Below, in pieces: positions 90 to 36,341 of a stretch of 64,000 nucleotides of DNA (the stretch's first letter is position 1; the number at the start of each line of letters is the position of its first letter). The translations under genes and the position numbers were made by a program. Origin of the DNA: Anthoceros angustus (lineage: Eukaryota > Plantae > Anthocerotophyta); contig VJWM01000117.1 of the NCBI GenBank assembly GCA_010909165.1, forward strand, positions 682,001 to 746,000, in the 5' to 3' direction. The notes under the pieces are model-generated. The model saw nothing but the letters and a program-made list of their open reading frames with translations. It had not been told where the DNA came from and did no database searches.

Positions 90-2801
90 ATGGCCACAGT
101 ATGGCAACCTGATGCAATGTGGACCCAGCAAATTGGTGAGTGTTCAGGGATTTTACGAGGAGCTCCTGCTCACCTCATCACCGTAGAGAGTCAACTGTTC
201 GGAGACAACCAAGCCTCCAGGTGCAGCGGTTTAAGGATCCCAGCATTTCCACTTCCCAGGAATTGTGTGGGTTGGGAAGGATTTTGCACCGATGGTCGTC
301 GACAAAAGCAGGAGCAGGAGCTCCTCTGGGAACAACTTTTTCTGGACCCTACCATGTGGTGGGACAACAGGCGAGATAAGAAGAGCTCCCGTTCGCCTGA
401 CTTCCGGCGTAAGGGATCTGGCGGCGAGGTCCTGTGGTTGAACAACATGTTCAAGCCAGCTTGGGTGGATGAGCAGCTCGTTACTTTGGATATGCAGATG
501 GGTCATGGTGCTTCTCCTCTTAAGGCGAGCTCACCGGATAAGCCCGAGGCTGGCAGGCGTGCAGAATTGGAAATGGACGTCGAAATGGCTGCAACAGTGA
601 GCACGTTATGCCAGCAGGGTAAGCTTGCTGAGGCCGTTGGAACCCTGGAATCTCTGGCGCAGACAGACTCCCCTGTTTCTCCGTCTCTGCTTTATACTGT
701 GCTGAAGCTGTGTACAGCTAGAAGAGATTTGGTTGTGGGGAAACGACTTCATGACCTCACTGTCAAACTTGGGTACGAGTCGAATGCATACTTGGGCAAC
801 CATCTCTTGCGCATGTATGCATGTGGAGGTAGGTTACAGGAGGCCATGGATGTGTTCACCAGGGTAGGCAAACCGGATGCCTTTATGTGGGGTTCCATAA
901 TTTCCGCATATGCTAAGCAAGGGAAACCAAAGGAGGCCATACAACTTTACCATGAGATGCGCAGGTCAGGTGTGAAGGCGGATGCTCACGTCTTTGCAGC
1001 TGCCCTTCAAGCGTGTGCGTTTGCTGCCGATTTGGAATCTGGCAGAAGAGTGCACTGTGATCTGTTGCATAGTCGTATTTCTCTTAACTTGTTTGTGGGT
1101 ACCTGCTTGGTGGATATGTACGCAAAATGTGGTCAACTGGACGATGCACGCGGGGTTTTTGACAGCTTGGAAACAAAAAATGTGGTGACATGGACGGCCC
1201 TTATAGATGGGTATGCAAAATGTGGCGAACTGGACGGTGCACGTCAGGTTTTTGACAGCTTGCCCACAAAAAATGTGGTGACATGGAATGCCCTGATTGC
1301 TGGGTATACACAGCAAGGGCTCGGTCAAGAGGCACTTCTTCTGTATGGACAAATGGAGCAGGAGGGCCTGACTTTGGCTGACGATGTCACTTTTGCTTGC
1401 CTTCTGAAGGCCTGCGCAAGCACTGGTGCTTTACTGAGAGGCAGGCAGCTGCACTCACAGATTGTGGAAAGGGGACTGCTAGATAACATACTTGTTGGCA
1501 CCTGCCTGGTGGACATGTATGCAAAATGTGGCAAACTGGATGATGCACGCATGGTTTTTGACAGCTTAGCCAGGAAGGATGTGGTGACATGGAATGCCCT
1601 GATTGCTGGGTATACACAGCAAGGGCTCGGTCAAGAGGCACTTGTTCTGTATGGACAAATGGAGCAGGAGGGCCTGAATTTGGCTGACGATGTCACTTTT
1701 GCTTGCCTTCTGAGGGCCTGTGCAAGCACTGGTGCCTTACAGAGGGGCAGGCAGCTGCACTCACAGATTGTGGAAAGAGGACTGCTAGATAACATACTTG
1801 TTGGCACCTGCCTGGTGGACATGTATGCAAAATGTGGCAAACTGGATGATGCACGCATGGTTTTTGACAGCTTAGCCAGGAAGGATGTTGTGACATGGAC
1901 GGCCCTGATATCTGGGTATGGTGCTTGTGATGAAACTCAGCTCGCACGAGGTTGTTTCCGGGAGATGTTAGTGGCCGGTATTCAGCCCGATGATGCTGCT
2001 TTTACTGCCCTTTTAGCAGCATGCAGTCATGGGGGACTGGTGCATGAGGGTCGTGAGCACTTCGATTCCATGACTAAACAGCATGGCATCAAACCTACTT
2101 TTGAGCATTACAATTGCATGATTGATCTTCTTGGGCGAGCAGGCCATCTGGACGAGGCAGAAAACATGGTATTATTATGTGAGGGCCAAGGTAATATTGT
2201 GGGCCTGACGTCTCTGCTGAATGCCTGCAAAAATCACGGGGATCTAGAGAGGGCGAAGCGATGCTTTGAAAGCCTTGTTAGACTGGACCCTCAGCGGGCA
2301 CCCGCATATGTGCTCATGGCCAATGCTTATGCAGATGCAGGTAGGTGGACCGATGCAGAGAGGATTGAAACACAGAGAATGATAGTAGGAGCTAGCAAGA
2401 AACCTGCAGTGTCCACCATTGAGGTGAAGAATGAAGTACATACGTTTGCGGTGGGAGAAAGAAGAAACGATATTGCGCTAAAGGTAGAGAGCACGAATGC
2501 ACGGCTGAAGCAGGAAGGGGGACATGTACCACAGACAAAGTTGGTGTTGAAGCCACTGTCCGAGAAGGAAAAGGAAGATGAGCTTTGTGGGCATGCTGAG
2601 AAGCTAGCCCTGGCGTTTGGTCTCTTGAACACTCCGAGTGGAACTCCTCTGGTGGTAACAAAAAACCTACGCATGTGCAGTGACTGTCACAGGTCCACAG
2701 AGATCATGTCAAGGCTTGAAAAGAGAGACATCGTTGTAAGGGATGCGTACCGTGTTCATCGATTCGCAGCTGGAGGTTGCAGTTGTAAGGGTCGACCGTG
2801 A
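90..2801 (+). CDS. PLS-class PPR protein with N-terminal PDF(OSB)-like motif and C-terminal DYW:KP (GRP-type) domain; candidate U-to-C editing factor (paralog 1)
   Basis: Intronless ORF. P/L/S repeats (VVTWNALIAGY.., DVTFACLLKAC.., LVDMYAKCG..), E1/E2, then KKPAV..HAEKLALAFGL..NLRMCSDCH..CSCKGRP*. The frame is open back to position 3, but the ATG at 90 (MATVWQPD) is the one conserved across paralogs. Confidence 0.92.
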   Translation: MATVWQPDAMWTQQIGECSGILRGAPAHLITVESQLFGDNQASRCSGLRIPAFPLPRNCVGWEGFCTDGRRQKQEQELLWEQLFLDPTMWWDNRRDKKSSRSPDFRRKGSGGEVLWLNNMFKPAWVDEQLVTLDMQMGHGASPLKASSPDKPEAGRRAELEMDVEMAATVSTLCQQGKLAEAVGTLESLAQTDSPVSPSLLYTVLKLCTARRDLVVGKRLHDLTVKLGYESNAYLGNHLLRMYACGGRLQEAMDVFTRVGKPDAFMWGSIISAYAKQGKPKEAIQLYHEMRRSGVKADAHVFAAALQACAFAADLESGRRVHCDLLHSRISLNLFVGTCLVDMYAKCGQLDDARGVFDSLETKNVVTWTALIDGYAKCGELDGARQVFDSLPTKNVVTWNALIAGYTQQGLGQEALLLYGQMEQEGLTLADDVTFACLLKACASTGALLRGRQLHSQIVERGLLDNILVGTCLVDMYAKCGKLDDARMVFDSLARKDVVTWNALIAGYTQQGLGQEALVLYGQMEQEGLNLADDVTFACLLRACASTGALQRGRQLHSQIVERGLLDNILVGTCLVDMYAKCGKLDDARMVFDSLARKDVVTWTALISGYGACDETQLARGCFREMLVAGIQPDDAAFTALLAACSHGGLVHEGREHFDSMTKQHGIKPTFEHYNCMIDLLGRAGHLDEAENMVLLCEGQGNIVGLTSLLNACKNHGDLERAKRCFESLVRLDPQRAPAYVLMANAYADAGRWTDAERIETQRMIVGASKKPAVSTIEVKNEVHTFAVGERRNDIALKVESTNARLKQEGGHVPQTKLVLKPLSEKEKEDELCGHAEKLALAFGLLNTPSGTPLVVTKNLRMCSDCHRSTEIMSRLEKRDIVVRDAYRVHRFAAGGCSCKGRP

Positions 2802-2958
2802 GAATGAAAACAAACTTGACCGTGAGAATGAAAGCAAACTTGACCGTGAGAATGAAAAAAAAACTTGACCGTGGGAATGAAAAAAAAACTTGACTGTGAG
2901 AATTAAAGAATACTTGACAGTGAGAATGAAAAAAAACTTGAGCATGAGAATGAAGAAA
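2795..2958 (+). repeat. Tandem repeat (~23-25 bp, ~7 copies) spanning the stop codon of paralog 1
   Basis: Unit cttgaccgTGAgaatgaaaaaaaa; the first copy overlaps the Arg-Pro-stop codons. Confidence 0.85.
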
Positions 2959-3383
2959 GGCTTTAGGCCGGAGGAGTAACGCCCCTCACTACACAGCAAT
3001 TAAGGAGGCGACAAGTGTCGGCTTCCTTGTGGACTAGGACTTCATCAATTTACTCCATAAGAGATAGTCAATTCACTCCACAAGAGATAGTCAATTCACT
3101 CCACAAGGAACATGCACAATTTTCAGCACTCCAAGTAACCCTGCCGTCCACTAACAACTAACAGGCCACGTCCTTGAGGTGCTGCTCTTTATTGAGAGAA
3201 TATACACTTGTAAAAATCTATATTTATTGAGAGAATACACACTTGTAGAAAGCCGTAGAATACACACTTGAGTCTGGCGATCTATTGAGAGAATAGACAC
3301 TTGTAGATAGCCATAGAATAGACACTTGAGTCTGGCTATCTACGGCCAACTGGCTACTGCCCTTGAGTCTGGCTAGTGCCCTT

Positions 3384-3586
3384 GACTCAAGGGCAAGCTC
3401 ACAAGCTAAGACTCAAGGGCAAGCTCACGAGCAAAGACTCAAGGGCAAGCTCACAAGCTAAGATTCAAGGGGCTTGTGAGACTCAAGGGCAAGCTCACAA
3501 GCTAAGATTCAAGGGGCTTGTGAGACTCAAGGGCAAGCTCACAAGCTAAGATTCAAGGGGCTTGTGAGACTCAAGGGCAAGCTCAC
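3384..3586. repeat. Minisatellite (gactcaagggcaagctcacaagctaag.. units, three near-identical ~44-bp copies plus shorter ones)
   Basis: Direct inspection; further short tandem repeats flank it at about 3050-3330 and 3720-3790. Confidence 0.8.
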
Positions 3587-4343: not shown

Positions 4344-7300
4344 CTGGCACACGGTAGTCGCTGATTGCTTTTGTGAGGTGTGCAGACCGGTCACCTCAGC
4401 AGGGTAGGGGCAACCTGGCTCTGTCCAGCATCGCTGAAAACCCTCTCGAACAAGTTCTCCAGGAAGAAACTCCTCCACCAGAAACCTCAGCTGATCACTA
4501 CCTCTCCTATGTCCTCAACATGCATCCAGGCTGGGCCGGCAGTGGATGCCTTCCATGCAAACCATCCTCAACTACAACGCTAATTTCTTGCCTCCCTACA
4601 ATCCAGCTTACATCAGGCCCGTCACCTAAGGATGGGATGCGTAGAGCGCCCTTGATGAACAGAGGAACGGCAGTCCAGTCTATGAGCAAGACTTTGATGT
4701 GATTGGCTTTTCGTCGAAAGACATTAACATGACTTGTCCTCTCGAGAGAGAGAGCCATGTCAGTGGATTGTACTGTGGTCTTAATTTCTATGCTAGATAG
4801 GTCCTCCAAATGATGCATTCAAGCAGTTTTCAACCCGATATATCCTCCAGGCTAACCTGATTTTTAGTCCCTGGCCTGCTAATAAAATTTCACAGTCTAC
4901 CTTGACACAGCCTGGGACGATGGTAACGGCAGATCTGGAAGACCCTTTCCTTCCAGTGCAGGTTAGACCCTTTCCGTTCTGAATCACTAAGGGTTGTGAA
5001 GGCCCAGCTTTTGGACAGTATACCTGCAATGCTGCAGAACACACTCCATATGGAGTCAGCTTTAGGCACCCTGACCTAGCCTAGCTCCAGGCCTTCTTGC
5101 CACCTCTTGACTGCTCTGGTAACGCAAGAAATGGTTTACCAGCTAGGTTCTGGCGGCCTTGTGCTTTTGTAGGTTTGTTAGTTCGTTGGCAGTAGTGACC
5201 TATAGTTGAATTTCTCAGGAAGAAGTACCGGTTGTCAATTTTGGGGCTTCAGATATCGGAAGATCCAGGCGGTATCACACTTATACACATCCTTACGTTG
5301 TTTTTCTGGATGGTGGAAGAAAGTGGCGTTGCAACTTAGCAGGTGCTCTACTGAATGAGGGTACTACACTGGCCTTGTTCAGTGGATACATATCTTCCAC
5401 GAGACCCAGAAAGGTCGTACCTACATTCATTTCATTCAGATAGATTTTCTGTATCATGAAAAGAGGTGGATCCGTTTTAGAGACCTACATATGTCTGTTT
5501 CAGTTTTAACAGGGATAGCTTACCCCTCAGAAGCAAGCAATACTCTGTCGCATACACAATTGAGCATTGGGTAGTCCATCATCATTCTCACGGTCGACCT
5601 TTACAACTGCAACAGCCAGCTGCGAATCGATGCACGCGGTACCCATCCCTTACAACAATGTCTCTTTTTTCAAGCCTTGACATGATCTCCGTAGAACTGT
5701 GACAGTCACTGCACATCCGTAAATTCTTTGTTACCACCAAAGGGGCGCCACTCGGAGTGTTCAAGAGACCAAACGCCAGGGCTAGCTTCTCAGCATGCCC
5801 ACAAAGCTCATCTTCCTTTTCCTTCTCGGACAGTGGCTTTAACACCAACTTTGTCTGTGGTACATGTCCCCCTTCCTGCTTCAGCCGCGCATTCGTGCTC
5901 TCTACCTTAAGCGCAATGGAATCTGTCCTATCTCCTACCACAAAAATATGAACCTTCTCCTTCACCTCAATGCCTGCCACTGCAGGTTTCCTGGCACACG
6001 GTAGTCGCTGATTGCTTTTGTGAGGTGTGCAGACCGGTCACCTCAGCAGGGTAGGGGCAACCTGGTTCTGTTCAGCATCGCTGGAAACCCTCTCGAACAA
6101 GTTCTCCAGGAAGAAACTCCTCCACCAGAAACCTCACCTGATCACTACCTCTCCTATGTCCTCAACATGCATCCAGGCTGGGCCGGCAGTGGATGCCTTC
6201 CATGCAAACCATCCTCAACTACAACGCTAATTTCTTGCCTCCCTACAATCCAGCTTACATCAGGCCCGTCACCTAAGGATGGGATGCGTAGAGCGCCCTT
6301 GATGAACAGAGGAACGGCAGTCCAGTCTATGAGCAAGACTTTGATGTGATTGGCTTTTCGTCGAAAGACATTAACATGACTTGTCCTCTCGAGAGAGAGA
6401 GCCATGTCAGTGGATTGTACTGTGGTCTTAATTTCTATGCTAGATAGGTCCTCCAAATGATGCATTCAAGTAGTTTTCAACCCGATATATCCTACAGGCT
6501 AACCTGATTTTTAGTCCCTGGCCTGCTAATAAAATTTCACAGTCTACCTTGACACAGCCTTGGACGATGGTAACGGCAGATCTGGAAGACCCTTTCCTTC
6601 CAGTGCAGGTTAGACCCTTTCCGTTCTGAATCACTAAGGGTTGTGAAGGCCCAGCTTTTGGACAGTATACCTGCAATGCTGCAGAACACACTCCATATGG
6701 AGTCAGCTTTAGGCACCCTGACCTATCCTAGCTCCAGGCCTGCTTGCCACCTCTTGACTGCTCTGGTAACGCAAGAAATGGTTTGCCAGCTAGGTTCTGG
6801 CGGCCTTGTGCTTTTGTAGGTTTGTTAGTTCGTTGGCAGTAGTGACCTATAGTTGAATTTCTCAGGAAGAAGTACCGGTTGTCAATTTTGGGGCTTCAGA
6901 TATCGGAAGATCCAGGCGGTATCACACTTATATACATCCTTACGTTGTTTTTCTGGATGGTGGAAGAAAGTGGCGTTGCAACTTAGCAGGTGCTCTACTG
7001 AATGAGGTACTACACTGGCCTTGTTCAGTGGATACATATCTTCCACGAGACCCAGAAAGGTCGTGTACCTACATTCATTTCATTCAGATAGATTTTCTGT
7101 ATCATGAAAAGAGGTGGATCCGTTTTAGAGACCTACATATGTCTGTTTCAGTTTTAACAGGGATAGCTTACCCTCAGAAGCAAGCAATACTCTGTCGCAT
7201 ACACAATTGAGCATTGGGTAGTCCATCATCATTCTCACGGTCGACCTTTACAGCTGCAACAGCCAGCTGCGAATCGATGCACGCGGTACCCATCCCTTAC

Positions 7301-7637
7301 AACAATGTCTCTTTTTTCAAGCCTTGACATGATCTCCGTAGAACTGTGACAGTCACTGCACATCCGTAAATTCTTTGTTACCACCAAAGGGGTGCCACTC
7401 GGAGTGTTCAAGAGACCAAACGCCAGGGCTAGCTTCTCAGCATGCCCACAAAGCTCATCTTCCTTTTCCTTCTCGGACAGTGGCTTCAACACCAACTTTG
7501 TCTGTGGTACATGTCCCCCTTCCTGCTTCAGCCGCGCATTCGTGCTCTCTACCTTAAGCGCAATGGAATCTGTCCTATCTCCTACCACAAATGTATGAAC
7601 CTTCTCCTTCACCTCAATGCCTGCCACTGCAGGTTTC
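4344..7637. repeat. Head-to-tail tandem duplication, 1647-bp unit (4344-5990 / 5991-7637)
   Basis: Both copies start ctggcacacggtagtcg and end tgcaggtttc. They are near-identical, with scattered substitutions. Confidence 0.93.
5588..5990 (-). pseudogene. Isolated DYW:KP(GRP) domain fragment copied from the 3' end of paralog 2
   Basis: KPAVAGIEVKEKVH..HAEK..CSDCH..CSCKGRP*. It begins exactly at the duplication junction and has no PPR tract upstream. Confidence 0.85.
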
Positions 7638-9943
7638 TTGTTAGCTCCTGCTGTCGTTCGCTGTGTTTCAATCCTTTCGACATCGGTCCACCTACCTGCA
7701 TCTGCATAGGCATTGGCCATGAGCACATATGCAGGCGCTTGCTGAGGGTCCAGTGTCACAAGCCTTTCAAAACACCGTGTCGCCCTATCTATATCGCAGT
7801 GACTTTTTGAGGCAGTCAGCAAAGACGTCCACCCAACAACATTACTGTGGCCCTCACATGATAATAGCATCTTCTCTGCCTCATCTAAATGGCCTGCACG
7901 CCCCAGAAGATCAATCATGCAGTTGTAATGCTCAAGACTAGGTTTGACGCCATGCTGTTCAGCCATGGATTCAAAGTGCTTGCGACCCTCTTGGACCAGT
8001 CCCTCGTGACTACATGCCACTAAAAGGCAAGTAAAAGTGGCATCATCAGGCTGAATACCGGCAACTAACATCTCCTCAAAACAGGCTAGTGCCTTGTAAC
8101 CTTCATCACAAGCACCATACCCAGATATCAGGGACGTCCATGTCACTACATCCTTTGTGGCCAAGCTGTCAAAAACCGCTCGTGCTTCTTTGAGTTCCCC
8201 ACATTTTGCATACATGTCCACCAAGCACGTGCCAACGAGTAGATTATCTAGCAGTCCTTTTGCCCCAATCTGTAAGTGCAACTGTCTGCCCTTCTGTAAG
8301 GCACCGGCGCTTGCACAGGCCTTCAGAAGGAAAGCTAAAGTAACATAATCAGCCACAACCAGGCCCTCCTGCTCCATTTGTCCATACAGAACAAGGGCCT
8401 CGTGACCAAGTCCCTGCTGGGTATACCCAGCAATCAGGGCCGTCCATGTGACCACATCCTTTGTGGCCAAGCTGTCAAAAACTCTGCGAGCATCTTCCAG
8501 TTCGCCACATTTTGCATACATGTCCACCAGGGAGTTGCCAACTAGTTTGGTATCCAGCAGCCCTCTTTCCACAATCTGTGAGTGGAGCTGCCTGCCCTTC
8601 TGTAAGGCACCAGTGCTTGCACAGGCCTGCAGAAGACAAGCAAAAGTAACATAGTCCGCAACAATCTCGCCCTCCTGCTCCATTTTACCATACAGGACAA
8701 GCGCCTCTTGGCCTTGCCCTTGCTGTGTATACCCAGCAATCAGAGCATTCCATGTCACCACACTTTTCGTGGCCAAGCCGTCAAAAATCTGGCGTGCAGT
8801 TTCCAGTTCTCCAGATTTTGCATACCCAGCTATGAGGGCCGTCCATGTCACCACATTCTTTGTGGCCAAGCTGTCAAACACCCTGCGTGCATCTTCCAGT
8901 TTGCCACATTTTGCATACATGTCCACCACGCAGGTGCCAACAAACAAGTCCAGAGGAATGCCACTGTGCAACACATCCCTGTGCAGTTTCCTGCCAGATT
9001 CCAAGTCGGCAGCAAATGCACAAGCTTGAAGGGCAGCTGCAAACACGTGAGCATCCGCCTTCACACCCGACCTTCGCATCTCATGGTACAGTTGTATGGC
9101 CTCATGAGGTTTCCCATGTTTAGCATACGCGGAGATTATGGAAGACCACATGAAGGCATCTGGTTTGCCTACCCTGGTGAACACATCCATGGCCTCCTGT
9201 AGCCTACCTCCACATGCATACATGCGCAAGAGATGATTCCCCAAGTATGCATTCGACTCGTATCCAAGTTTGACGGTGAGATCATGGACTCGTTGCCCCA
9301 CAACCAAATCCTTCTGAGCTGTACACAGTTTGAGAACAGTATAGATCAGAGACGGAGGGACAGGACAGTCTGTCAGCGCCAGAGATTCCAGGGCTCCTAC
9401 AGCCTCAGTGAGCTTCCCGTGCTCACATAACGTGCTCACGGTTACAGCCGTTACAACGCCCATTTCCGGTCGTGTACGCCACCCAGGCTCAGGCTTCTCC
9501 GGAGAGCTGGACTGGGAAGGAGAGGCACCATGACCCATCTGCCTATCCAAACAAATGAGCTGCTCATCCACCCAAGCTGGCTTGAACATGTTGTTTAACC
9601 ACAAGACCCCGTCGCCAGACCCCTTACGCCGGAAGTCAGGCGACCGGGAGCTCTTCTTATCTAGCCTGTTGTCCCACCACATGGCAGGGTCCAGAAAAAA
9701 TTGCTGCCACAAGCGCTCCTGCTCTTGCTCCTGGCAACGACCATCATTGGAAAATCCTTCCCCACCCACAAATTCTCTCGGAAGTGGAAGTGCTGGTTTC
9801 CTTACACTGCTGCACCTGGAAGCGTGATTGATTCCCAGGGGACTCCCTGAGGTGACGAGGTGAGCGGGAGCTCCTCGTAGAATCCCGGTACACTCACCCG
9901 TTTGTTGGATCCACCATGGATCCAGTTGCCATGCGGTGGCCAT
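7235..9943 (-). CDS. PDF-PLS-PPR-DYW:KP(GRP) protein, paralog 2 (902 aa)
   Basis: Intact intronless ORF MATAWQLD..WWDNRLDKK..PDFRRK..PPR array..HAEK..CSDCH..CSCKGRP*. Confidence 0.93.
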   Translation of the reverse strand: MATAWQLDPWWIQQTGECTGILRGAPAHLVTSGSPLGINHASRCSSVRKPALPLPREFVGGEGFSNDGRCQEQEQERLWQQFFLDPAMWWDNRLDKKSSRSPDFRRKGSGDGVLWLNNMFKPAWVDEQLICLDRQMGHGASPSQSSSPEKPEPGWRTRPEMGVVTAVTVSTLCEHGKLTEAVGALESLALTDCPVPPSLIYTVLKLCTAQKDLVVGQRVHDLTVKLGYESNAYLGNHLLRMYACGGRLQEAMDVFTRVGKPDAFMWSSIISAYAKHGKPHEAIQLYHEMRRSGVKADAHVFAAALQACAFAADLESGRKLHRDVLHSGIPLDLFVGTCVVDMYAKCGKLEDARRVFDSLATKNVVTWTALIAGYAKSGELETARQIFDGLATKSVVTWNALIAGYTQQGQGQEALVLYGKMEQEGEIVADYVTFACLLQACASTGALQKGRQLHSQIVERGLLDTKLVGNSLVDMYAKCGELEDARRVFDSLATKDVVTWTALIAGYTQQGLGHEALVLYGQMEQEGLVVADYVTLAFLLKACASAGALQKGRQLHLQIGAKGLLDNLLVGTCLVDMYAKCGELKEARAVFDSLATKDVVTWTSLISGYGACDEGYKALACFEEMLVAGIQPDDATFTCLLVACSHEGLVQEGRKHFESMAEQHGVKPSLEHYNCMIDLLGRAGHLDEAEKMLLSCEGHSNVVGWTSLLTASKSHCDIDRATRCFERLVTLDPQQAPAYVLMANAYADAGRWTDVERIETQRTTAGANKKPAVAGIEVKEKVHTFVVGDRTDSIALKVESTNARLKQEGGHVPQTKLVLKPLSEKEKEDELCGHAEKLALAFGLLNTPSGTPLVVTKNLRMCSDCHSSTEIMSRLEKRDIVVRDGYRVHRFAAGCCSCKGRP

Positions 9944-10001
9944 GTTACAGGCAATGGTTTCGGAACTCCCAACACACTATTCACGCCATGCCAATTTTTT
10001 T

Positions 10002-12559: not shown

Positions 12560-15500
12560 CAGGGTGTCATTTTGACCCCGTCAAAAGCTCGGTCCCGGTC
12601 CCGGCATGTGTTAAAAAAAACATGGGACCGGAGGTTCTTCAGGAGTCCGATCCACACCCTCGGTCCCCGAAAAGATAGGGGACCGAGGGTTCATAAAAGG
12701 TCCGGTTTAAAATTAGTAAATTACTTAATTTTATATCCAAGGATTTATATTTATTATGGACACATGGACCCATCTTATAATTGGTATGGTCATAAAGACA
12801 CTTACCATGGATCTATGGGCTATGTCTTTATTTATCTAATACCATCCATGGCCTATTAATACAGCCTTTATTCTATGAGATTTTATTAGCTTATTTTGAT
12901 ACATCTATAAAAAGTAGATATGTAATATTTTGCTTTGAATGTAGTTATTAATGTATACAATAATTTGTTGATATGCACGCTCATCCATGAAGATGGACTA
13001 AGATATGGTATCTCAACCATAGGCTTACATAGGACTCTTATCCTATTATGCTATGAATAGACACCCTTCAAGAGTACATAAGGCCACAACACTAGCATTT
13101 GGAGCATCACTCATTGTTGCTCTCCTCATTGTGGTGTGCTTGTTATTTTTCTTTCTTGCTTCTTATTCTTCTTCCTTGCTCCTTGTTGTTCTTTCTTGGT
13201 AAGGGCTCTTCTTTTTTAGAGCTCATCTCTTTTGAGCTCTTTAGGTTTAGAGTTCATTTTGTTTGAGCTCATCTCTTTTAAGCTCTTCTCTTTTAAAGCT
13301 TTGTTTTTGGCTCTTCATTGCTATATTAATTTTTTAAAAATTTGCGGTAAAGATGGCTCATTTTCTCAAAGTTCAGATCCGGGTTTTTGGAGGGCTCCAC
13401 GTGATGACCAAACAAGGAGTGGCGACAATAGCCAAACAAGCCAACCGAGTCAAAAGAGACAAAAGGTGCAAAAGGCAAGAGTCTTCAAGGAAGAATGGAA
13501 GGTTGCATTTCATTGGGTGGAGTTGCGCTCAATCAATGGAGAGAATCGAATGTTTTGTGTTGTTTGTGAAAAACATGGTCATGGTGTAGTGGGACAAGCT
13601 AAGGCTGCGACTCAAGCTTGGGTAAAAGTTGGCAGTCAGAACTTTCAGAAGAGTGCATTGGAGGACCATGCAAGGAGTACATATCATTTAGCGTCACTGA
13701 AGATGGAGCAAGCCCAAGCCAAGGCTCAACAACCAACCATGCAACGAACTTTGGAAATGCATTTTTCCAAAAAGGATAAGGAGATTCTCAACTTGTTGAA
13801 GTTCGCTTATTTCATTGCTAAGAAGGATTTGAGTTTCCATATGTACGAGGACCTTTGTGAGTTCATGGGGGATATTGGAGTGGAAGGCATTCCAGAGGTG
13901 AAGACATATGGTTCATATCTTACGAGATAGTGCTTGCAAGGAGCATGTGGTTCTCATAGCCAATTTTTTACGCGAACAACAGAAGGAGAGGTTGCGTGCA
14001 AGTCCATGGTATGGGATACTCATAGATGAGGGGACAGACAAGGCGATGGTGCAACACATAATTATTTATGTGTATTATTTGCATAATGGGACGGTACGAA
14101 CGGAGTTTTTGAAGCTAGCCAACATAACAAGTGCACGTGCGGAAGGGATCTTCAACGCCTTGGTTGAGCAATTGCAACTCTTTGATCTGGACATCAAAAA
14201 ATGAGTGGATTTGCAAGCGATGGAGCATCACATGATTGGCAAGGGGAAGGCCAAGGAGATCACAATGTTGTGAAGTTTGCGGAATGTGAATCCGTATTTT
14301 GCTCAAACTCATTGTGTTGCTCACGGCTTTGCTTGCAGAGGCGATCCAAGGTTCCGACTTTGAGGTGGCGGACAAGATTGTCAAGAAATTGCGCTCTTCA
14401 TCATTCAAGTAAGAAGACTACGACTTTTGCGTGAATTGCAAGTGCAATTAGAAATGCAAGTCTTAAGCATGTGGTTCTCATAGCCAATTTTTTACGCGAA
14501 CAACGGAGAGGTTGCGTGCAAGTCCATGGTATGATACTCATAGATGAGGGGAGACAAGGCGATGGTGCAACACATAATTATTTATGTATTATTTGCATAA
14601 TGGGGGATGCAACGGAGTTTTGAAGCTAGCCAACATAACAAGTGCACGTGGAAGGGATCTTCAACGCCTTGGTTGAGCAATTGCAACTCTTTGATCGGAC
14701 ATCAAAAAATGAGTGGATTTGCAAGCGATGGAGCATCGATCATGATTGGCAAGGGGAAGGCCATCACAATGTTGTGAAGTTTGCGGAATGTGAATCCGTA
14801 TTTTGCTCAAACTCATTGTGTTGCTCACCGGCTTGCAGAGGCGATCCAAGGTTCCGACTTTGAGGTGGCGGACAAGATTGTCAAGAAATTGCGCTCTTCA
14901 TCATTCAAGTAAGAAGACTACGGCTTTGCGTGAATTGCAAGTGCAATTAGAAATGCAAGTCTTAATCAGAATTCATGATGTCCGTTGGTTGTCTAGAGGT
15001 CAAGCCATAAGTAGAATAGTTTGTCTATTACCAGCTTTACTTAAATTTGCTCAAGAGGATGAGAGCCTAAATTGGCCAAAAGCCAATAAGGGTCCAAGTA
15101 GTTCTTCTTCTTTGCAGGGAAGACTGTCTTCCAAGCTTTACTAACTACTAAGGCCTTGTTTTCATTTCACTTTTTATCGATATTTTAGAGGTCCTTAATT
15201 CCTTGAATACTAACTTTCAACGTGATTATCTGGAGCCGTTAGCATAGCTCCCTCATAGATTCTGTTGTTGAACAGTCAAAAGTATGTATAAAGTTGATAG
15301 GGTGAGTATGGGAAGTAGAAAGCTTTTCTTTCATTGAAAACTTGAAAAAAGTCATGGAGTGTATGAGGGTTTTGTAATATCGACTACTGAAAGTGAACTA
15401 AGTTCTTGCATTGCTAGTGCTAACAAATATGCTTTAGCTGTTGTTGATGCAATGAATAATAAGTTTCCTGATCTTTGTGTGTTGCATGCTTGTCGTCTAT

Positions 15501-16141
15501 TCATCCTAAATTTTATCCACGAAGATGCGGATGAGCATACATTAGTTAATAGTTTGTTAGAGGTATTGTTGAAAAAGTTTGGAACTAACTCTTTGGATGC
15601 AAATACTAATGTTGTCGACCCTTTTGTAGTTGATGAGGTGTGTCAAGCTGAGTTGCTAACATTTGTGTCCATCTTGAAGTCTTCTTGTGCTGGATTGAGT
15701 ATGTTAGCAGCTTACAAAATATACTCAACAACTCGGGAGTGGGTAGTACTGACACCCTCTATGTTACGTCTTTGGGAATTATGTTTGGTCATACCTTGTA
15801 GTACTGCTATATGTGAGCGGGGATTTTCTAAACAAAACTTTGTGATGAATAACATGAGAACTAATCTTAATATTTTGACCCTTGATGCATTGATGAGTAT
15901 ATCCATCAATGGTCCGCCTGTTAAGGAGATAGATTGGAATGGTATTTTTAAAGCTTGGAAAGACCAGCCCCGACGATAGAATATACTAGACATTTGTATT
16001 TTATATTATAATTTATAATTTATTTATTTATTTATTATATTTTAGTGACCAAGGGTCGCAAAGGCACTCCACTGTCCGGGACCGAGCGTAGCTAAACTAG
16101 CGGTCCGGGACCGAGCTAGTACTCGGTCAAAATGACACTCG
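12560..16141 (+). mobile_element. hAT-superfamily DNA transposon (ZNF862/TTF-zinc-finger type transposase, frameshifted)
   Basis: TIR CAGGGTGTCATTTTGACC / GGTCAAAATGACAC(C)CTG. 8-bp TSD GCGATAAC at 12552-12559 and 16142-16149. Subterminal GGTCCC/GGGACC repeats. ORF pieces: FKEEW..FCVVC..H zinc finger, YGILIDEGTD, and the dimerisation motif IPCSTAICERGFSKQN. Confidence 0.92.
13942..14965. repeat. Tandem duplication (~520/500 bp) inside the hAT transposase
   Basis: agcatgtggttctcatagcc starts both copies (13942, 14466); the copies differ by many 1-4 nt indels. Confidence 0.85.
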
Positions 16142-18656: not shown

Positions 18657-18760
18657 CCGAGAGCACTGTGTGAGGAATTTGCATTTTGTTCTCGTGGGGA
18701 GAGTGTGTTTGTGTCACGATGTGCGAGCTACTCTCAGCTCCTATTCTTATTGATTTGCGC

Positions 18761-19088
18761 CTATATTTGCATATTAGATTTGTTTTGCACCTATATTTGC
18801 ATATTAGATTTGTTTTGCACCTATATTTGCATATTAGATTTGTTTTGCACCTATATTTGCATATTAGATTTGTTTTGCACCTATATTTGCATATTAGATT
18901 TGTTTTGCACCTATATTTGCATATTAGATTTGTTTTGCACCTATATTTGCATATTAGATTTGTTTTGCACCTATATTTGCATATTAGATTTGTTTTGCAC
19001 CTGTATTTGCATATTAGATTTGTTTTGCACCTATATTTGCATATTAGATTTGTTTTGCACCTATATTTTCATATTAGATTTGTTTTGC
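18761..19088. repeat. 30-bp minisatellite, ~11 copies, within LTR-like sequence
   Basis: Unit ctatatttgcatattagatttgttttgcac; a single copy of the same unit occurs at ~16799 in the Gypsy LTR-like region. Confidence 0.92.
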
Positions 19089-23244: not shown

Positions 23245-25847
23245 TCACGGACGACCGCCACAACTGCAACAACCATCTGCGAACCGATGCACACGGTACC
23301 CATCCCTTACAACAATGTCTCTCTGTTCTATCCTTGACATGATCTCCGTGGAACTGTGGCAGTCACTGCACATGCGTAGATTCTTCGTTACCACCAGAGG
23401 TGTCCCACTCGGAGTGTTCAACAGACCAAACGCCAGAGCTAGCTTCTCAGCATGCCCACAAAGCGCATCTTCCTTTTCCTTCTCACCCAGTGGTTTCAAC
23501 ACCAACTTTGTATGAGGTACATGGCCGCCTTCCTCCTTCAGACGGGCACTCGTGCTCTCTACCTTCAGCGCAAGATCGTCTCTTCTTTCTCCCACCACAA
23601 ATGTATGTACCTGCTTCCTCACCTCAATGGTTGCCATTGCAGGTTTCTTGTTAGCTCCTGCTACCACCCTCTGAGTTTCAATCCTTTCTACATCGGTCCA
23701 CCTACCTGCATCTGCATAGGCATTAGCCATGAGCACATATCCAGATGCCCTGAGGTCCAGCTAACAATGCTTTCAAAACACCACGCCCTCTCTAAATCCC
23801 CGTGACTCTTGCAGGCATTCAGCAAAGACGTCAACCCCACAGTATTGGTTTGGCTCTCACATGACAAGAGCATGTTCTCTGCCTCATCTAACTGGCCTGC
23901 ACGCCCAAGAAGATCAATCATGCAATTGTAATGCTCAACAGTAGGTTTGATGCCATGCTGTTCAGCGATGGAATCAAAGTGCTTGCTACCCTCATGGACG
24001 AGTCCCCCATGACTGCATGCTGCTAAAAGGCAAGTAAAAGTAGTATTATCAGGCTGAATACCAGCGGCTAACATCTCCTCAAAACAAGCTAGTGCCTTGT
24101 GACCGTCGTCACAAGTACCACACCCAGCTATCAAGGCATTCCACGTCACCACATCCTTTGTGGCCAAGCTGTCAAAAACCCGGCGTGCCTCTTTCAGCTC
24201 GCCACATTTTGCATACATGTCCACCAGGCCATTGCAAACCAGTATGTTATCTAGCTGTCCCCGTTCCACAATTTGTGAGTGCAGCTGCCGGCCCTGCTGC
24301 AAGGCACCGGCGCTTGCACAGGCTTTTAGAAGGCAAGCGAAGGTAACATGGTTAGGCAAAACCAGGCCATCCTGCTCCATTTGTCCATACAGAACAAGGG
24401 CCTCTTGACCGAGCCCTTGCTCAGTACACCCAGCTATCAGGGCATTCCATGTCACCACATCCTTTGTGGCCAAGCTATCAAAAACCTGGCGTGCATCTTT
24501 CATTTCGCCACATTTTGCATACATGTCCACCAGACAGTTGCCTAACACTACGTCACCCAGCAGTCCTCTTTCCACGATCTGTGAATGCAGCTGCCTGCCT
24601 TTCTGTAAGGCGCTGGTGCTTGCACAGGCCTTTAGAAGGCAGGCGAAAGTAACTTGATCAGCCACAAGCAAGCCCTCTTGCTGCATTTGTTCATACAGGA
24701 CAAGCGCCTGTTGGCCGCAACCATGATTCGCATACCCAGCAATCAGGGCCGTCCATGTCACCACATCCTTCGTGACCAAGCTGTCAAAAACCTGGCGTGC
24801 ATCTTTAAGGTCGCCACATTTCGCATACATGTCCACCAGGCAGTTCCCAACAATCAAGTTAGGAGGAATCCTACTGTGCAACACATCACTGTGCACTTTC
24901 CTGCCAGATTCCAAATCCGCAGCAAATGCACAAGCTTGAAGGGCAGCTACAAAGACGTGTCCATCTGCCTTCACACCTGACCCACGCATATCATGGTACA
25001 GTTGTATGGCCTCGTTCGGCTTCCCGTGTTGAGCATATGCGGAGATCATGGAACCCCACATGAAAGCATCTGGTTTGCCTACCCTGGTGAACACATCCAT
25101 AGCCTCCTGTACCCTACCTGCACATGCATACATGCGCAAGAGATGGTTCCCCAAGTATGCATTCGACTCATACCCAAGTTTGACGGTGAGATCATGAACT
25201 CGTCGTCCCAAAACCAAGTCCTTCTTAGCTGTGCACAGTTTTAGCACGGCATAAAACAGAGGCGGAGAAACGGGGCAGTCTGTCTGCGCCAGACATTCCA
25301 GGGCTCCAACGGCCTCAGCAAGCTTCCCCTGCTTACATAACGTGCTCACTGTTACAACCGTGACAACGCCCGATCCTACAGGCCTGCCAGGATCAGGATT
25401 ATCCGTAGGGCTCAACTTGGACGGAGAGGCACCATGACCCATCTGCATATCCAAAGAAACTAGCTGCTCATCCACCCAAGCTGGCTTGAACATATTGTTT
25501 AACCAGAGAACCTCACCGCCGGACCCCTTACGCCGGAAGTCAGGAGAACGAGAGCTCTTCTTATCTCGCCTGTTGTCCCACCACATTGCAGGGTTCAGAA
25601 AAAGTTGTTGCCACAATAGCTCTTGCTCCTGCTCCTGGCGACGACAATCGCTGGAAAATCCGTCCCCACCTACAGATTCTCTTGGAAGTGGAACTGCTGG
25701 GCTCCTTACACTGTTGCACCTGGGAGCTTGGTTATTTGCCAGAGGTTGAATCCCTATGATGAGGTGAGCGGGAGCTCCTCGTAGAATCCCTGAACACAAA
25801 CCAATTTGTTGGGTGCTTACCGGGTCCGGTTGCCATACTGTGGCCAT
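23245..25847 (-). CDS. PDF-PLS-PPR-DYW:KP(GRP) protein, paralog 4, frameshifted near the E1/E2 junction (pseudogene or sequence error)
   Basis: ORFs 23688-25847 and 23245-23736 join into a full paralog. Several small deletions cluster at ~23735-23780. The protein ends CSCGGRP*. Confidence 0.8.
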
Positions 25848-25961: not shown

Positions 25962-28900
25962 GCCGGAGGCTAGTTCTCCCTGCAAAGTAATGGCGCTCTT
26001 CTCCCGAGGTGGTGGGCCCCATCGCCTAGCCTTGCCTCGCATCATGACCCATCCCATGTCCATAGCACCCTGTCTAGGTGAATACACGTATGAGCGCATA
26101 CTATACCATACACGGCAACCCGTAGCGGCGTGCGTCGTTCATGGCTCCGGTTTGTGGAATGGCCGGTTGGGGTTCATTTTAAGCGCGAAACGTGCCCTAA
26201 TCAGTTCGCCAAACAGCCACATTTTAAACGGCCGCAAATCAGACACAATCCGCTTGGCAACGCGACGGGGCCTCCACCTCTTCTTGGGCGCATGGGATCG
26301 GACTCTTATCGGCAGACGTCCGCTTGGCAACGCGACGGGGCCTCCACCTCTTCTTGGAGCGCATGGGATCGGACTCTTATCGGCAGACGGAGCGTGACTC
26401 TGATAGCTCATGTTCCACGCTGACTGGCAGAAAATGGTGAAACATACAACTGAGAGGAGAACATCCAAGACTGTAGAGCAAAATTCCAAGGCTCAGTAAC
26501 TTCAGGCAGTTGCCATGTTCGCACAACTTTCTAAGCTTAGCCTCGGAGCTATAGGCAGTTCTATGTGCTAAGGCCTAGGAACTATAGGCAGTTGTATGTT
26601 TGACCTACTGGAATTTCACTTTCTGATCTTGGGGCCGTTCTTCCTCTGCCGACTCCTCCGTTTCCCAAAAGGCTTTTCCGTTTAAGAGAATTGTCTGTAT
26701 GAGCAGGATTGTGGTGTAGAATTGGTGTTTCATGCAACTGGTGAAGATGAAGATCAGCGCCCAACCCTTGGACCTGCCTTACTAATTGTCCCATCATGGC
26801 AGCAACATGATTTTCTAACTGTGGCCACTTCTCCACCATTCCCCTAATCTCTGCCCAACTCACGTCCATGGACTGGACACCCTGGTTCAGGCAAGGTACT
26901 TGGGGCCCTTCTTGGACAACATCCTGTTTGGGGCAGCGTAATTCATGCCCATCCTGGCAAACATTCACTGCAGGCTCCTCATAACTTGTTGTGTGCATGA
27001 CCTGACTTGCCAAATTGAAATTATCAGTACCATGTTCCTTCAACATATCCATCAGTTTGTGCACAAGCATCTGTGTAGCTGTCATTCGATTTAACATCAG
27101 CAAAACCTTCACTTGATGTTTGCAAACAAAGCCATTCAATCCTTGTTTGCAGTTGCAAGCAGCCCACTGCCTTCCGCCATTTAGCACCTCGTACTCCACT
27201 GTTGACCCGTTAAGTGCCTTCTGACTTTTAACGTATGCTGAAGCATTATCCGTTGTCGGGAGTGTGACATCCACATTTGGAATTTGCAGTGCCTTAGTAA
27301 TTGCATGGTGCACAAGTCTCTCCAACTTGGTGTTGTGAACAATATTCAGCAACTTGCATTGTGATTGGAACCAAAATGCCGATTGACTTCATCCACAAGG
27401 ATATGAAGTAACCAATCTAAACGTCTACACAGTAAGCCGCTTCTTCGTAGCGACATCCGAATTTCAAGTGCTGGTGGTAGGCTTCTATGCTCATTGCGTC
27501 TTGGCCAGCATGTGGGACTTCCAGCTTTGATCCACATAGTCATAATCGCCCCATTGCCGCTTAAAATAAGTCACAAATTCGGCTCATATTGCGTATGTCG
27601 AGTAGAATCGTCAAGCTCCGCCACTTCTCCATACCGCAGCCTTGCTCCTCCATATACATAATTTTACCAAGTGTGCTCATCATCTCGCTCTCCCGACTTT
27701 ATTTTTCACCTTCTTTATGAGTTGTCTCAACCAAGCACGCACATGCCACAAACACAAAACACCAACATGTTAGAGCCGAATACTTGTCGATAGCGTTAAT
27801 CTCGGCAGCAATCGTCCACCAAGAAAGCATTGGGCTTCCACTGGATCGACTTCTCCAACATCGCTTTAAAGCCCCACCATGCACTAATATTGTCAAAGCT
27901 GTTGTCGAAATGATCCATGCCCGGTAGCGTTCATGTGGTCATCAAGACCAACACGTAAACAAGCGAAATTTCCATTTGTTAGTCCCGAACGTGGCATCCA
28001 TAGAGACAATCGAGTTATGGCCCCACCTCAACATACATGAGTCTTTGAAATGGTGTCGAATACCGATTAAAGTGACACCGTCGATAGACTTAGAGCTGAA
28101 GGAAGAAAAGAAAATCTCATGCTTGTGTAAGTCCATCCATATTCTCACACTTTCCTCATCGATGATGCAATCTCCATGTCCTGCAATCAAGCTCTGTATG
28201 TTTCTTATATCCTTGGGCAATAAGAAATCATCCGGACCAAGTGGCATCTTGGGTTGTCCTTCTTCTGCGATACATCCTCCTCATGATCACACATAATTTG
28301 GTAATTGGTCAGCTGGCATAAGAGCTTGTGCTTTACCCATTCCCGCTTTGCCATAGATAAAACAGGAGCAAGAGAAACATTAGCAGGGGCATCAGTAGCT
28401 AACAAATCATGGCAGAAATCACCATTCATGTCTATGTGGTGCCATTCGTGAATTCGTATCTCTGCAATTCCTGGCCATTGCAATAATCTGCTGATGAAGA
28501 ACTGGAATTTACAGCCCCTTTTCCTATTGCGGCCAGTCTTCATGCGTGACGGCCTGCTGCCTTTCCCCTTTTTTGGACGGTTTGTCACATCAATGAAAGG
28601 CTCCACACCTGTAAGACGAAAATCTTGTGGTCCGTAAGCACATTCATATTTAATATATGAGCTTGGTGAATTAGGCAGCACGATATCGGGTCCGTGGACC
28701 GTTTCAGACATTACGTCTTACAAGCGTTGTGGGGAGCAGAGAGTTCTCGCTTCCCGCAAGAAAATCGTCCACTCTATCCCGAAACGTAGGCTATTTTGAC
28801 ATTCGTAACCATCTTCCTGCATGCTTGAGGGCAACCATAAATCTTCTTCTTGAAATGCCCAACAATCGGAAGGCATGGCGGAGGCATGTATCCATACTCA

Positions 28901-29937: not shown

Positions 29938-30880
29938 TCAATGCCCTTTGCAGAGCAATGGATACTCATTGTTGGAAAGAATGCAGAGCAATGGGCATAA
30001 CAATGGATACTCATTGTTGGAAAGAATGCAGAGCAATGGGCATAGCAATGGATACTCATTGTTGGAAAGAATGCAGAGCAATGGGCATAGCAATGGATAC
30101 TCATTGTCGGAAAGAATGTCCTCAAGATTGCCAATGCCCTTTGCAGAGCAATGGATACTCATTGTTGGAAAGAATGCAAAGCAATGGGAATAGCAATGGA
30201 TACTCATTGTCGGAAAGAATGCATAGCAATGGGCAGAGAAATGGATACTCATTGTCGGAAAGAATGCATAGCAATGGGCAGAGAAATGGATACTCATTGT
30301 TGGAAAGAGTGCAGAGCAATGGTTGGAAAGAATGCAGAGCAATGGGCATAGCAATGGATACTCATTGTCGGAAAGAATGCACAGCAATGGGTAGAGAAAT
30401 GGATACTTATTGTTGGAAAGAGTGTAGAGCAATGGATACTCATTGGCGAAAAGAATGCAGAGCAATGGGCAGAGAAATTGACACTCATTGTCGGAAAGAA
30501 TGCAAAGCAATGGGCAGAGCAATGGATACTCACTGTTGGAAAGAATGCACAGCAATGGGCAGAGAAATGGATACTCATTGTTGGAAAGAGTGCAGAGCAA
30601 TGGATACTCATTGTCGGAAAGAATGCACAGCAATGGGCAGAGAAATGGATACTCATTGTTGGAAAGAGTGCAGAACAATGGATACTCGTTGTCGAAAAGA
30701 ATGCAGAGCAATGGGCAGAGCAATGGATACTTATTGTCGGAAAGAATGCACACCACTGGGTAGAGCAATGGATACTCGTTGCCAGCTGCAAAGGGTACTC
30801 GTTGCCAGCTGCAAAGGATACTCGTTGCTTAAACTCTGCAAAGGATACTTGTTGCCAGAAAAAGGATACTCATTGCCGGA
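29938..30880. repeat. Large minisatellite (45- and 33-bp variants of gcaatggatactcattgttggaaagaatgcaga..)
   Basis: About 20 units, degenerating toward the 3' end. Confidence 0.9.
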
Positions 30881-32841: not shown

Positions 32842-35800
32842 ATGACCACAGTATGGCAACCGGACCCATTGTGGACCCAGCAAATTGGTGGGTTTACAGG
32901 GATTCTACGAGGAGCGCCTGCTCACCTCACCTTAAGGAGTCAGCCGCTGGGAAACAGTCAAACCTCCAGGTGCAGCAGTGTAAGCAACCCAGAAGTTCCA
33001 CCTCGGGGAGAATGTTTGGGTGAGGAACGATTCTCCAGCGATGGCCTTCGCCAGGAGCAGGAGCTCTTGTGGCAACAGTTTTTTCTGGACCCTACCATGT
33101 GGTGGGACAACAGGCGAGATAGAAAGAGCTCCCGTTGGCCTGACTTCCGGCGTAAGGGGTCAGGCGAGGTCCTGTGGTTAAACAACATGTTCAAGCCTGA
33201 TTGGGTGGATGAGCAGCTCGTTTCTTTGGATGTACAGATGGGTCATGGTGCCTCTCCTTCCAAGTGGAGCTCTTCGAAGAAGGCTGAGCCTGGCAGGCAT
33301 GTAGGGTCGGAAATGGGCGTCACAAAGGCTGTAACCGTGAGCATGTTATGCAAGCAGGGGAAGCTTGGTGAGGCCGTTGAAGCCCTGGATTCTCTGGCGC
33401 AGAGTGACTGTCCTGTTTCTGTGTCTCTGTTTTATTCCGTCCTAAAACTGTGTACAGCGAAGAAGGATTTGGTTGTGGGGCGGCGAGTTCATGATTTAAC
33501 TGTGAAACTTGGGTACGAGTCAAATACATACTTGGGGAACCATATCTTGCGCATGTATGCATGCGTAGGTAGGCTGCAGGAGGCCATGGATGTGTTCACC
33601 AGGGTAGGCAAACCAGATGCCTTCATGTGGTTTTCCATAATCTCCGCACATGCTAAACATGGGAAGCATTACGAGGCCATACAGCTATACGGTGAGATGT
33701 GTAGGTCAGGGGTGAAACCAGATGGTCACGTCTTTGTAGCTGCCCTTCAAGCTTGTGCATTAGCCACCGACCTGGAATCTGGCAGAAAAGTGCACTCTCA
33801 TGTGTTGCACAGTGATATTCCTCCTGACTTATTTGTTGGTGCCTGCCTGGTGGACATGTATGCGAAATGTGGCGAAATGGAACATGCGCGTGAGGTATTT
33901 GACAGCTTGGCCACAAAAAATGTGGTGACATGGAATGCCCTGATTGCTGGCTATGCAAATCATGGGCTTGCTCAAGAGGCGCTTGTTCTGTATGAACAAA
34001 TGGAGCAGGAGGGCGTGCTTGAGCCTGACCAGGTTACGTTTGCTGGCCTTCTGAAGGCCTGTGCAAGCATTCGTGCCTTATCGAAGGGCAGGCAACTGCA
34101 CTTCCAGATTGTGGAACGAGGACAGCTAGATAACATAGTGTTGGGCACCTGCCTGGTGGACATGTATGCAAAATGTGGCGCACTGGAAGATGCACGCCTG
34201 GTTTTTGACAGATTGGCCAGAAAGGACGTGGTGGCATGGAATGCCCTGATTGGGGGGTATGCCCAGCAAGGGCTTGGGCATGAGGCACTTGTTTTGTATG
34301 GACAGATGGAGCAGGAGGGCCTGGCTGTGGCTGACCACATTACTTTTGCTTGCCTTCTGAAGGCCTGCACACTGGTGCCTTACAGGGGCAGGCAACTGCA
34401 CTCAGATTGGAAAGAGGACTGCTGGATAACATACTGGTGGCATGCCTGGTGGACATGTATGCAAAATGTGGTGAACTGGAAGATGCACCAGGTTTTTGAC
34501 AGCTTGCCACAAAGGATGTGGTGACATGGAATGCCTGATTGCTGGGTATGCAGCAAGGGCTTGGCCAGAGGCGCTTCTGTATGGACAAATGGAGCAGGAG
34601 GGCCTCATTTGGCTGACCATGTTACTTTTGCTTGCCTTCTGAAGGCCTGTGCAAGCACTGGTGCCTTACAGAAGGGCAGGCAGCTGCACTCACAGATTGT
34701 GGAAGAGGACAGCTAGATAACATACTGGTGGTCAATTGCCTGGTGCACATGTTTGCCAAATGTGGCGAACTGGAATGTGCACGCCAGATGTTTGACAGCT
34801 TGCCCACAAAGGATGTGGTGACATGGAATGCCGTGATTGCAGGGTACGCACAACAAGGGCTTGGCCAGGAGGCGCTTCTTCTGTATGGACAAATGGAGCA
34901 GGAGGGCCTCATGTTGGCTGACGATGTTACTTTTGCTTGCCTTCTGAATGCCTGTGCAAGCACTGGTGCCTTACAAAAGGGCAGGCAGCTGCACTCACAA
35001 ATTATGGAAAGAGGACTGCTTGATAACATAGTGCTGGGCAACTGCCTTGTGGACATGTATGCAAAATGTGGTGAACTGAAAGATGCACACCAGGTTTTTG
35101 ACGGCTTGATCAGAAAGGATGTGGTGACATGGAATGCCCTGATTGCTGGTTATGCACAGCAAGGGCTTGGCCAAGAGGCGCTTTTCTTGTATGATCAAAT
35201 GGAGCACGAGGGCCTGGTTGTTGCTGACCAAGTTACTTTTGCTTGCCTTCTGAAGGCCTGTGCGAGCGCTGGTGCCTTACAAAAGGGCCGGCAGCTGCAC
35301 TCACACATTGTGGAACGAGGACTGCTAGACAACATACTGGTTTCCAACTGCCTGGTGGACATGTATGCAAAATGTGGCGAGCTGAAAGAAGCTCGCCAGG
35401 TTTTTGATAGCTTGCCCACAAAGGATGTGGTGACATGGAATGCCTTGATAGCTGGTTGTGGTACTTGTGATGAAGGTCACCAGGCACTAGCTTGTTTTGA
35501 GATGATGTTAGCCGCTGGTATTCAGCCTGATGATGCTACTTTCACTTGCCTTCTAGCAGCATGCAGCCATGAGGGACTTGTGCATGAGGGTCGCAAGCAC
35601 TTTGATTCCATGGCTCAACAGTATGGCATCAAACCTACTATTGAGCATTACAATTGCATGATTGATCTTCTTGGGCGTGCAGGCCAGTTGGATGAGGCAG
35701 AGAACATGCTCTTATCATGTGAGAGCCAAAGCAATACTGTGGGGTTGACGTCTTTGCTGAATGCCTGCAAGAGTCATGGGGATTTAGTGAGGGCGGCCCG

Positions 35801-36341
35801 GTGTTTTGAAAGTCTTGTTAGACTGGAGCCTCAGTGTGCATCTGGATATGTGCTCATGGCCAATGCCTATGCAGATGCAGGTAGGTGGACCGATGTAGAG
35901 AGGATTGAAACACAAAGGGTGGTAGCAGGAGCTAACAAGAAACCTGCGGTGGCGACCATTGAGGTGAAGACGCAGGTACATACATTTGTGGTGGGAGAAA
36001 GCAGAGATGATCTTGCACTGAAGGTAGAGAGCACGAATGCGCGTTTGAAAGAGGAAGGCGGCCATGTACCCCATACGAAGTTGGTGTTGAAGCCACTGGG
36101 TGAGAAGGAAAAGGAAGATGCGCTTTGTGGGCATGCTGAGAAGCTAGCTCTGGCGTTTGGTCTCTTGAACACTCCAAGTGGGACACCTCTGGTGGTAACG
36201 AAGAATCTACGCATGTGCAGTGACTGCCACAATTCCACGGAGATCATGTCAAGGGTTGAAAGGAGAGACATTGTTGTAAGGGATGGGTACCGTGTGCATC
36301 GATTCGCAGCTGGCTCTTGCAGTTGCAATGGGCGACCATGA
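32842..36341 (+). CDS. PDF-PLS-PPR-DYW:KP(GRP) protein, paralog 5, with a longer PPR array; frameshifts at ~34365-34640
   Basis: ORFs 32803-34524 and 34632-36341 plus an intervening frame form one gene with six xMxAKCG S-motifs. It ends CSCNGRP*. The conserved start MTTVWQPD is at 32842. Confidence 0.82.

Follow-up and report, generated by a model that had tools for sequence, protein, structure and literature searches.

To our knowledge, U-to-C conversion stands alone among the pyrimidine transitions in having no natural enzyme that is well understood. The pentatricopeptide repeat (PPR) proteins that end in a DYW:KP domain are confined to lineages with U-to-C editing, and in hornworts they form two subgroups, DRH and GRP (PMC9478123), a subgrouping that this paper credits to Gerke et al. 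2020. Designer proteins KP2 and KP3, built on the GRP consensus, gave U-to-C editing of 26% and 22%, respectively, and no C-to-U editing when expressed in E. coli, and were less efficient than the fern-based designer KP6 (PMC9478123). Lysine 88 of the domain is required for the U-to-C reaction, and its replacement (K88A) flips the activity to C-to-U (PMC11845758). Designer proteins crosslink to RNA, and attack of a lysine on C4 of uridine, with a Lys-uridine Schiff base, has been proposed; native fern edits carry no RNA-protein crosslink (PMC11332814). Here, five paralogous PPR genes found in a 64,000-nucleotide (nt) stretch of the genome of the hornwort Anthoceros angustus, a species in which ~7.9% of the genes are PLS-PPR genes (PMC7027989), are compared with these systems. 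They are probably nuclear genes of the GRP subgroup and, by analogy with the GRP-based designers, would encode U-to-C editors.

The whole stretch, hereafter the window, covers positions 682,001 to 746,000 of contig VJWM01000117.1 (assembly GCA_010909165.1), and all coordinates given are those of the window. Five paralogous intronless PLS-class PPR genes lie at 90-36341 in the order + - - - +, as judged by the open reading frame (ORF) listing and by a tblastn search with g2. The same arrangement over 36 kb had been reported in a preliminary description of this locus and was confirmed, with three of the five paralogs uninterrupted as assembled. These are g1 (90-2801, + strand), which encodes 903 residues comprising a PLS-PPR tract, E1, E2 and a DYW:KP domain ending in GRP, g2 (7235-9943, - strand; 902 residues) and g3 (20259-22862, - strand; 867 residues and one S-type motif fewer than in g1 and g2). 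A frame break in the E1 motif interrupts g4 (23245-25847, - strand), in which E2 and the DYW domain are intact in another frame and end in GGRP. The longest paralog, g5 (32842-36341, + strand; ~1166 codons), is divided between two ORFs as assembled.

Pfam identified PPR repeats, E_motif and DYW_deaminase (PF14432, E ~1e-32) in the window paralogs. Motif-by-motif segmentation gave an order common to all copies, namely degenerate N-terminal motifs, S, P1-L1-S1 triplets, P2-L2-S2, E1, E2 and DYW, with one extra S-type motif within the PLS tract of g1 and g2. The PLS triplets form a 306-nt tandem repeat, present in 2.3-2.4 copies in g1-g4 and in 5.4 copies in g5.

The GRP-type DYW:KP domain and its relatives

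The DYW:KP domain lies at 2397-2798 (+) in g1, where it reads KKPA ... HAEK ... KNLRMCSDCH ... CSCKGRP, and at 7238-7639 (-) in g2; in g3 (20262-20663, -), g4 (23248-23649, -) and g5 (35937-36338, +) it was delimited by motifs and segmentation. A sixth copy, frag6, consists of the domain only and is described below. In place of a PG box, the domain begins with KKPA in g1-g5 and with RKPA in frag6, all six copies carry HAEK and CSDCH with CxxCH intact, and all end in GRP, as KGRP, NGRP or GGRP. The KP box, HAEK, intact CxxCH and GRP end noted previously are therefore present in all five C-termini. Counted from the second Lys of the box, the domain is 133 residues long, DYW:KP domains having 132-133, and this count places H65-A66-E67, K88 (the K of KNLRMC), M92 and C93/C96, and a second zinc site, HxF...CSC, is found in all six copies. 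The residues of the HAE/CxxC zinc site and Lys88 were invariant across 40 KP-type domains.

Between the 'IE' of the box and HxE, every window copy has 59 residues, compared with 62 in 48 of 58 HSE-type domains, and alignments to DYW structures in the PDB leave a 4-residue gap at the xHP position. Both observations bear out the short region between KP and the catalytic motif that the preliminary description had noted. In the PDB alignment, a Glu (..steims..) follows CxxCH where 9kfx has the PG-type Lys (..tatkfis..); Glu at the position of PG Lys103 is a trait of GRP proteins (PMC9478123).

The domain matched the solved DYW deaminase 7o4e by sequence (E 3.5e-29). An AlphaFold model of the E2 and DYW parts of g2 (pLDDT 81) matched 9kfx, 7o4e/7o4f and 7w86, with Foldseek values of 1.8e-17 for 9kfx and 3.9e-12 for 7o4e, and ordinary cytidine deaminases more weakly. 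The canonical DYW:PG domains of OTP86 (7o4e/7o4f), DYW1 (7w86) and a synthetic PPR-DYW protein (9kfx) thus share with the window copies the fold, the zinc ligands and the Lys before CxxC, but differ from them in having a PG box, HSE, three more residues (xHP), a DYW end and C-to-U activity, and in belonging to a separate clade.

For phylogenetic placement, 157 DYW domains from two database searches were classed by motif and a tree was built with IQ-TREE. The six window domains formed one clade (SH-aLRT 99), nested in a 10-member clade of all GRP-ending domains (SH-aLRT 97) that also takes in P0018, P0043, P0051 and P0122, all from public run assemblies. The GRP clade adjoins the DRH-ending domains within the HAE clade, and 93 of the 97 HSE/DYW-type (PG) domains lie on the opposite side of the tree. 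Grouping with PG- or WW-type domains would have spoken against the earlier proposal, and instead the window domains group with GRP and DRH and apart from the PG type, as these types were assigned by motif. The nearest database protein is 55% identical to the window copies overall and 72% identical in the DYW region, and the nearest GRP relatives are single genes, each on a short contig.

The likeness to the hornwort GRP subgroup, as represented by designers KP2 and KP3, extends to the KP box, HAE, CxxCH, the 133-residue domain, Lys88, the Glu in place of the PG-type Lys, the GRP end and the PLS-E1-E2 tract. Unlike KP2 and KP3, which are consensus designs, the window copies are native genes, and all five carry an N-terminal PDF-type module that is apparently absent from two of four other GRP proteins examined. 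The DRH subgroup and the fern and lycophyte DYW:KP proteins (KP1, KP4-KP6) share with the window copies the HAE site, a KP-type box, a shortened domain and membership of the larger clade; however, they have Asp at the third-last position and a DRH-like end and form a branch separate from GRP. Judged by sequence, the window genes belong to the already named hornwort GRP subgroup of DYW:KP PPR proteins.

The novelty of the locus was therefore overstated in the preliminary description, the class, its GRP subgroup and the activity expected of it having already been published. A hornwort genome holds hundreds of such PPR genes. With the subgroup already described down to its motifs and probable activity, and with relatives in such numbers, the cluster adds examples of the known GRP family rather than a new principle.

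Predicted editing activity and targets

The architecture, motifs, fold, clade and selection of the window copies are established by the data presented here, and the way in which the proteins would act can be drawn by analogy with described editors. Each protein has three parts, the N-terminal PDF-type module, the PLS tract and the 133-residue DYW:KP domain. The PLS tract would read ~14-17 nt of one organellar transcript via residue 5 and the last residue of each motif, and the DYW:KP domain would then be placed on the nucleotide that lies 4 positions downstream of the one recognised by S2. There, as in the GRP-based designers, it would convert the target uridine to cytidine, with Lys88 attacking C4 of uridine at the zinc site HAE...CxxC. 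The paralogs probably arose by old local duplications; since then their specificity residues have diverged and 306-nt PLS triplets have been gained or lost, and they probably serve different editing sites.

The link between the DYW:KP variant and U-to-C editing is stronger than previously stated, given the activity of KP2 and KP3 and the requirement for Lys88. The same lysine is the residue on which the direction of editing turns, and a single K88A change makes C-to-U editors of KP2, KP3 and KP6. The window proteins might thus edit C to U, or in both directions, rather than U to C: their zinc and glutamate deaminase site is intact, and C-to-U editing is also performed by the fern-based KP6. 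This is nevertheless improbable, as Lys88 is retained in all window copies, the GRP-based KP2 and KP3 gave only the U-to-C product in E. coli, and DYW:KP domains are known only from lineages with U-to-C editing.

Several points weigh against the assignment of the window genes as U-to-C editors. The published activity stems from consensus designs with RNA-protein crosslinks and not from native proteins. The organelle targeting, target sites, editing direction and activity of the window genes are deduced by analogy; import into organelles is assumed, the first 60 residues being only weakly basic in composition. In the assembly g4 and g5 have broken frames, and the tree's reference classes follow motifs rather than a curated PG/WW/KP set.

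The PPR-code residues obtained by motif segmentation vary among the copies, with S2 being NN in all. In the last seven motifs the codes of g2 and g3 are identical and g1 departs from them at two, and g4 and g5 are, by their codes, pyrimidine-rich readers. Read 5' to 3' and ending at position -4, the P and S motifs would recognise approximately U g n A A U n G U n G G n Y in g1, U G n A ? U n U G n G G n Y in g2 and U G n A C n U G a G G n Y in g3. It is likely from these codes that the copies have different targets, and the targets of g2 and g3 may overlap. Between g1 and g2, ~20% of the code residues in P and S motifs differ, which equals the overall divergence of the proteins, and this by-eye count gave no sign of special diversifying pressure.

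The triplet-to-triplet identity of the 306-nt repeat in g1 is 94%, versus 83% in the others. In the two central PLS triplets of g1 (1211-1919), which are mutually identical to that degree (83% in g2-g4), the PPR codes are identical as well. This pattern points to recent internal duplication or homogenisation in g1.

How plants complete the reaction matters here, as native fern edits are not crosslinked and the activity published to date is that of crosslinking consensus designs. The genes g1, g2 and g3 offer usable native test material, with readable PPR codes, native PPR tracts and the PDF module. As to the suggestion that each copy is a potential programmable-editing part, the GRP designs performed below KP6.

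An OSB-type PDF module at the N-terminus

A conserved PDF module of ~60 residues follows the first ~60 residues in all five window genes. In g1 (297-512, +) it has the pattern LW..FF.DP..WWDNR...PDF..K....LW....P.WV, and it was located by alignment in g2 (9524-9739, -), g3 (22446-22661, -), g4 (25428-25643, -) and g5 (33040-33255, +). The module had no match in the Pfam scan, and an Atlas search by features gave no usable match; when only the first 200 residues were used as query, a word-index search returned nothing at E <= 0.01. A profile built from 23 copies recovered 1320 proteins (E <= 0.001) from among 1.84 billion representatives. Among the best matches were proteins of 340-380 residues in which an SSB/OB fold (PF00436) is followed by two C-terminal copies of the module.

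This order, an OB fold and then PDF motifs, is the architecture of the OSB proteins (PMC6963530), which bind single-stranded DNA in plant organelles. The PDF motif of OSB1-4 has ~50-60 residues with an invariant W, WWD.R, PDF and P.W, as does the window module. Unlike OSB1-4, the window genes carry a single N-terminal copy on a PPR editing factor and no OB fold. The model of the module (pLDDT 87) consists of a helix, a small sheet and a helix, and matches a cluster of 272-residue plant SSB-domain proteins (TM 0.84) and three PPR/DYW clusters. Of the 218 PPR proteins examined, 22 begin with the module, including proteins from Diphasiastrum and Adiantum, a liverwort DYW:PG protein and a GRP protein. 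By motif and model, it is a PDF motif of the OSB type, common on PLS-PPR proteins of hornworts, lycophytes, ferns and a liverwort rather than confined to GRP proteins. A literature search found no paper describing a fusion of PDF and PPR. In other proteins the module occurs in up to 13 copies, and it is also found in a kinesin.

Within the OSB family, binding of single-stranded nucleic acid is known for AtOSB1 only (PMC6963530). It is conceivable, though doubtful, that in native GRP-type editors the PDF module functions as a second part that binds nucleic acid. As such, it could help to hold or release single-stranded RNA, and it could explain how native U-to-C editing is completed without a crosslink, the consensus designers being without the module.

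Age and integrity of the gene array

Pairwise synonymous divergence (dS) between the window genes is 0.24-0.45. The ratio of nonsynonymous to synonymous divergence (dN/dS) between pairs is 0.08-0.23 in E2 and DYW, rises to 0.18-0.26 when the last 350 codons are taken, and reaches 0.28-0.44 across the N-terminal third. The paralogs are homologous from 10-45 nt before their shared ATG to ~10-25 nt past the stop codon. As to a signature of retroposition, no poly(A) tract follows any copy, and the shared 3' sequence extends for only ~10-25 nt. Thus, on sequence divergence, the array is old and held by purifying selection, and is not currently expanding. The term 'locally expanding array', used in the preliminary description, finds no support in dS values of 0.24-0.45, homology that ends near the coding limits and constraint on E2 and DYW; the one young event gave a dead fragment, and no more than three of the five genes are intact as assembled.

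This young event is a partial duplication of 1.65 kb, represented by two head-to-tail units (4344-5995 and 5991-7643) that are ~98.7% identical, with a dS of 0.033. The unit contains the 3' flank of g2 together with exactly that end of g2 which encodes DYW; the junction, marked by a short shared CTGGCA, is at the KKPA codons. Its product, frag6 (5588-5992, -), comprises 134 codons and a stop codon and is 98% identical to the DYW domain of g2. A stand-alone DYW protein acting in trans, like DYW1 or MEF8, was considered for frag6 and rejected, as its frame is closed by a stop 17 codons upstream of the domain and offers no Met after that stop. From the sequence, the duplication is the sole recent event at the locus and frag6 is a start-less dead fragment.

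Whether five or three genes of the array are intact depends on the frame breaks in g4 and g5. Compared with the other four copies, g4 has a 3-nt deletion and deletions of ~4 nt (net -1) in the E1 motif, within ~45 nt at 23745-23790 (-), and in g5 ~ten deletions, each of 1-4 nt and with no insertion among them, identified by alignment, disrupt a PLS unit at 34365-34720 (+). If these breaks are real, the locus has just three working genes, along with two young pseudogenes and frag6. The breaks are present in the assembled letters, several deletions span 2-4 nt at places other than homopolymers, and reads offer nothing that contradicts them: no read run contained more than 0.29 of the sampled words, and the ~100-nt contigs aligned to the window, 92-99% identical and drawn from a very large paralog family, are not locus-specific. 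Exact matches to run contigs came from run X1 only and lie at 35426-35552, 35750-35860 and 36296-36500. A pseudogene origin has a substantial chance of being correct, albeit one short of even. Against it, the changes are deletions only, packed into ~45 nt in g4 and ~350 nt in g5, and the remainder of each gene, 2.5-3.1 kb in the two and ~3.1 kb in g5, is without a stop or indel. The dN/dS of 0.16 between g4 and g5 in E2 and DYW is like that of intact pairs, and related short contigs, which derive from paralogs, carry extra letters at 34385-34607, where g5 lacks them. On balance, we rate slightly higher an explanation by local errors in the consensus of a noisy assembly, with all five genes intact.

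Debris at the locus includes frag6, a PPR scrap at 36743-37094 and remnants with a PG box at 52.8-54.3 and 61.3-62.2 kb, and would suit an array that is decaying and unused, or one of RNA-binding or otherwise non-catalytic PPR proteins. Such an array is very unlikely, given three uninterrupted ORFs of 867-903 codons, the strongest constraint on precisely the catalytic domain (dN/dS 0.08-0.23) and the invariance of all catalytic and zinc-binding residues. The assignment as editors is retained as the probable one.

The PPR scrap (+ strand) lies just 3' of g5 and consists of one S-type motif with stops. The PG-box remnants, at 52778-54309 (+) and 61284-62241 (+), are decayed, truncated and heavily frame-broken PLS-PPR sequences in which a PG-type DYW start can be recognised (KKEPGRTWME and RKEPGRTWME, respectively). 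Between g2 and g3, remnants of a hAT-type transposon were found at 13232-15979 (+), with zf-C17orf113 and a hAT dimerisation domain. A 256-residue ORF at 26582-27352 (-) has a CxC...CxH pattern reminiscent of the SWIM zinc finger of Mutator-like transposases, and had no Pfam match. An intact ORF of 280 residues at 48442-49281 (-) matched Polysacc_lyase (PF14099, E 2.6e-65). Three further tandem repeats are present: an A-rich array of seven 24-nt units at 2794-2958, which starts within the last codons of g1, an array of eleven 30-nt units at 18750-19088, and a 45/78/123-nt array at 29950-30781, between g4 and g5.

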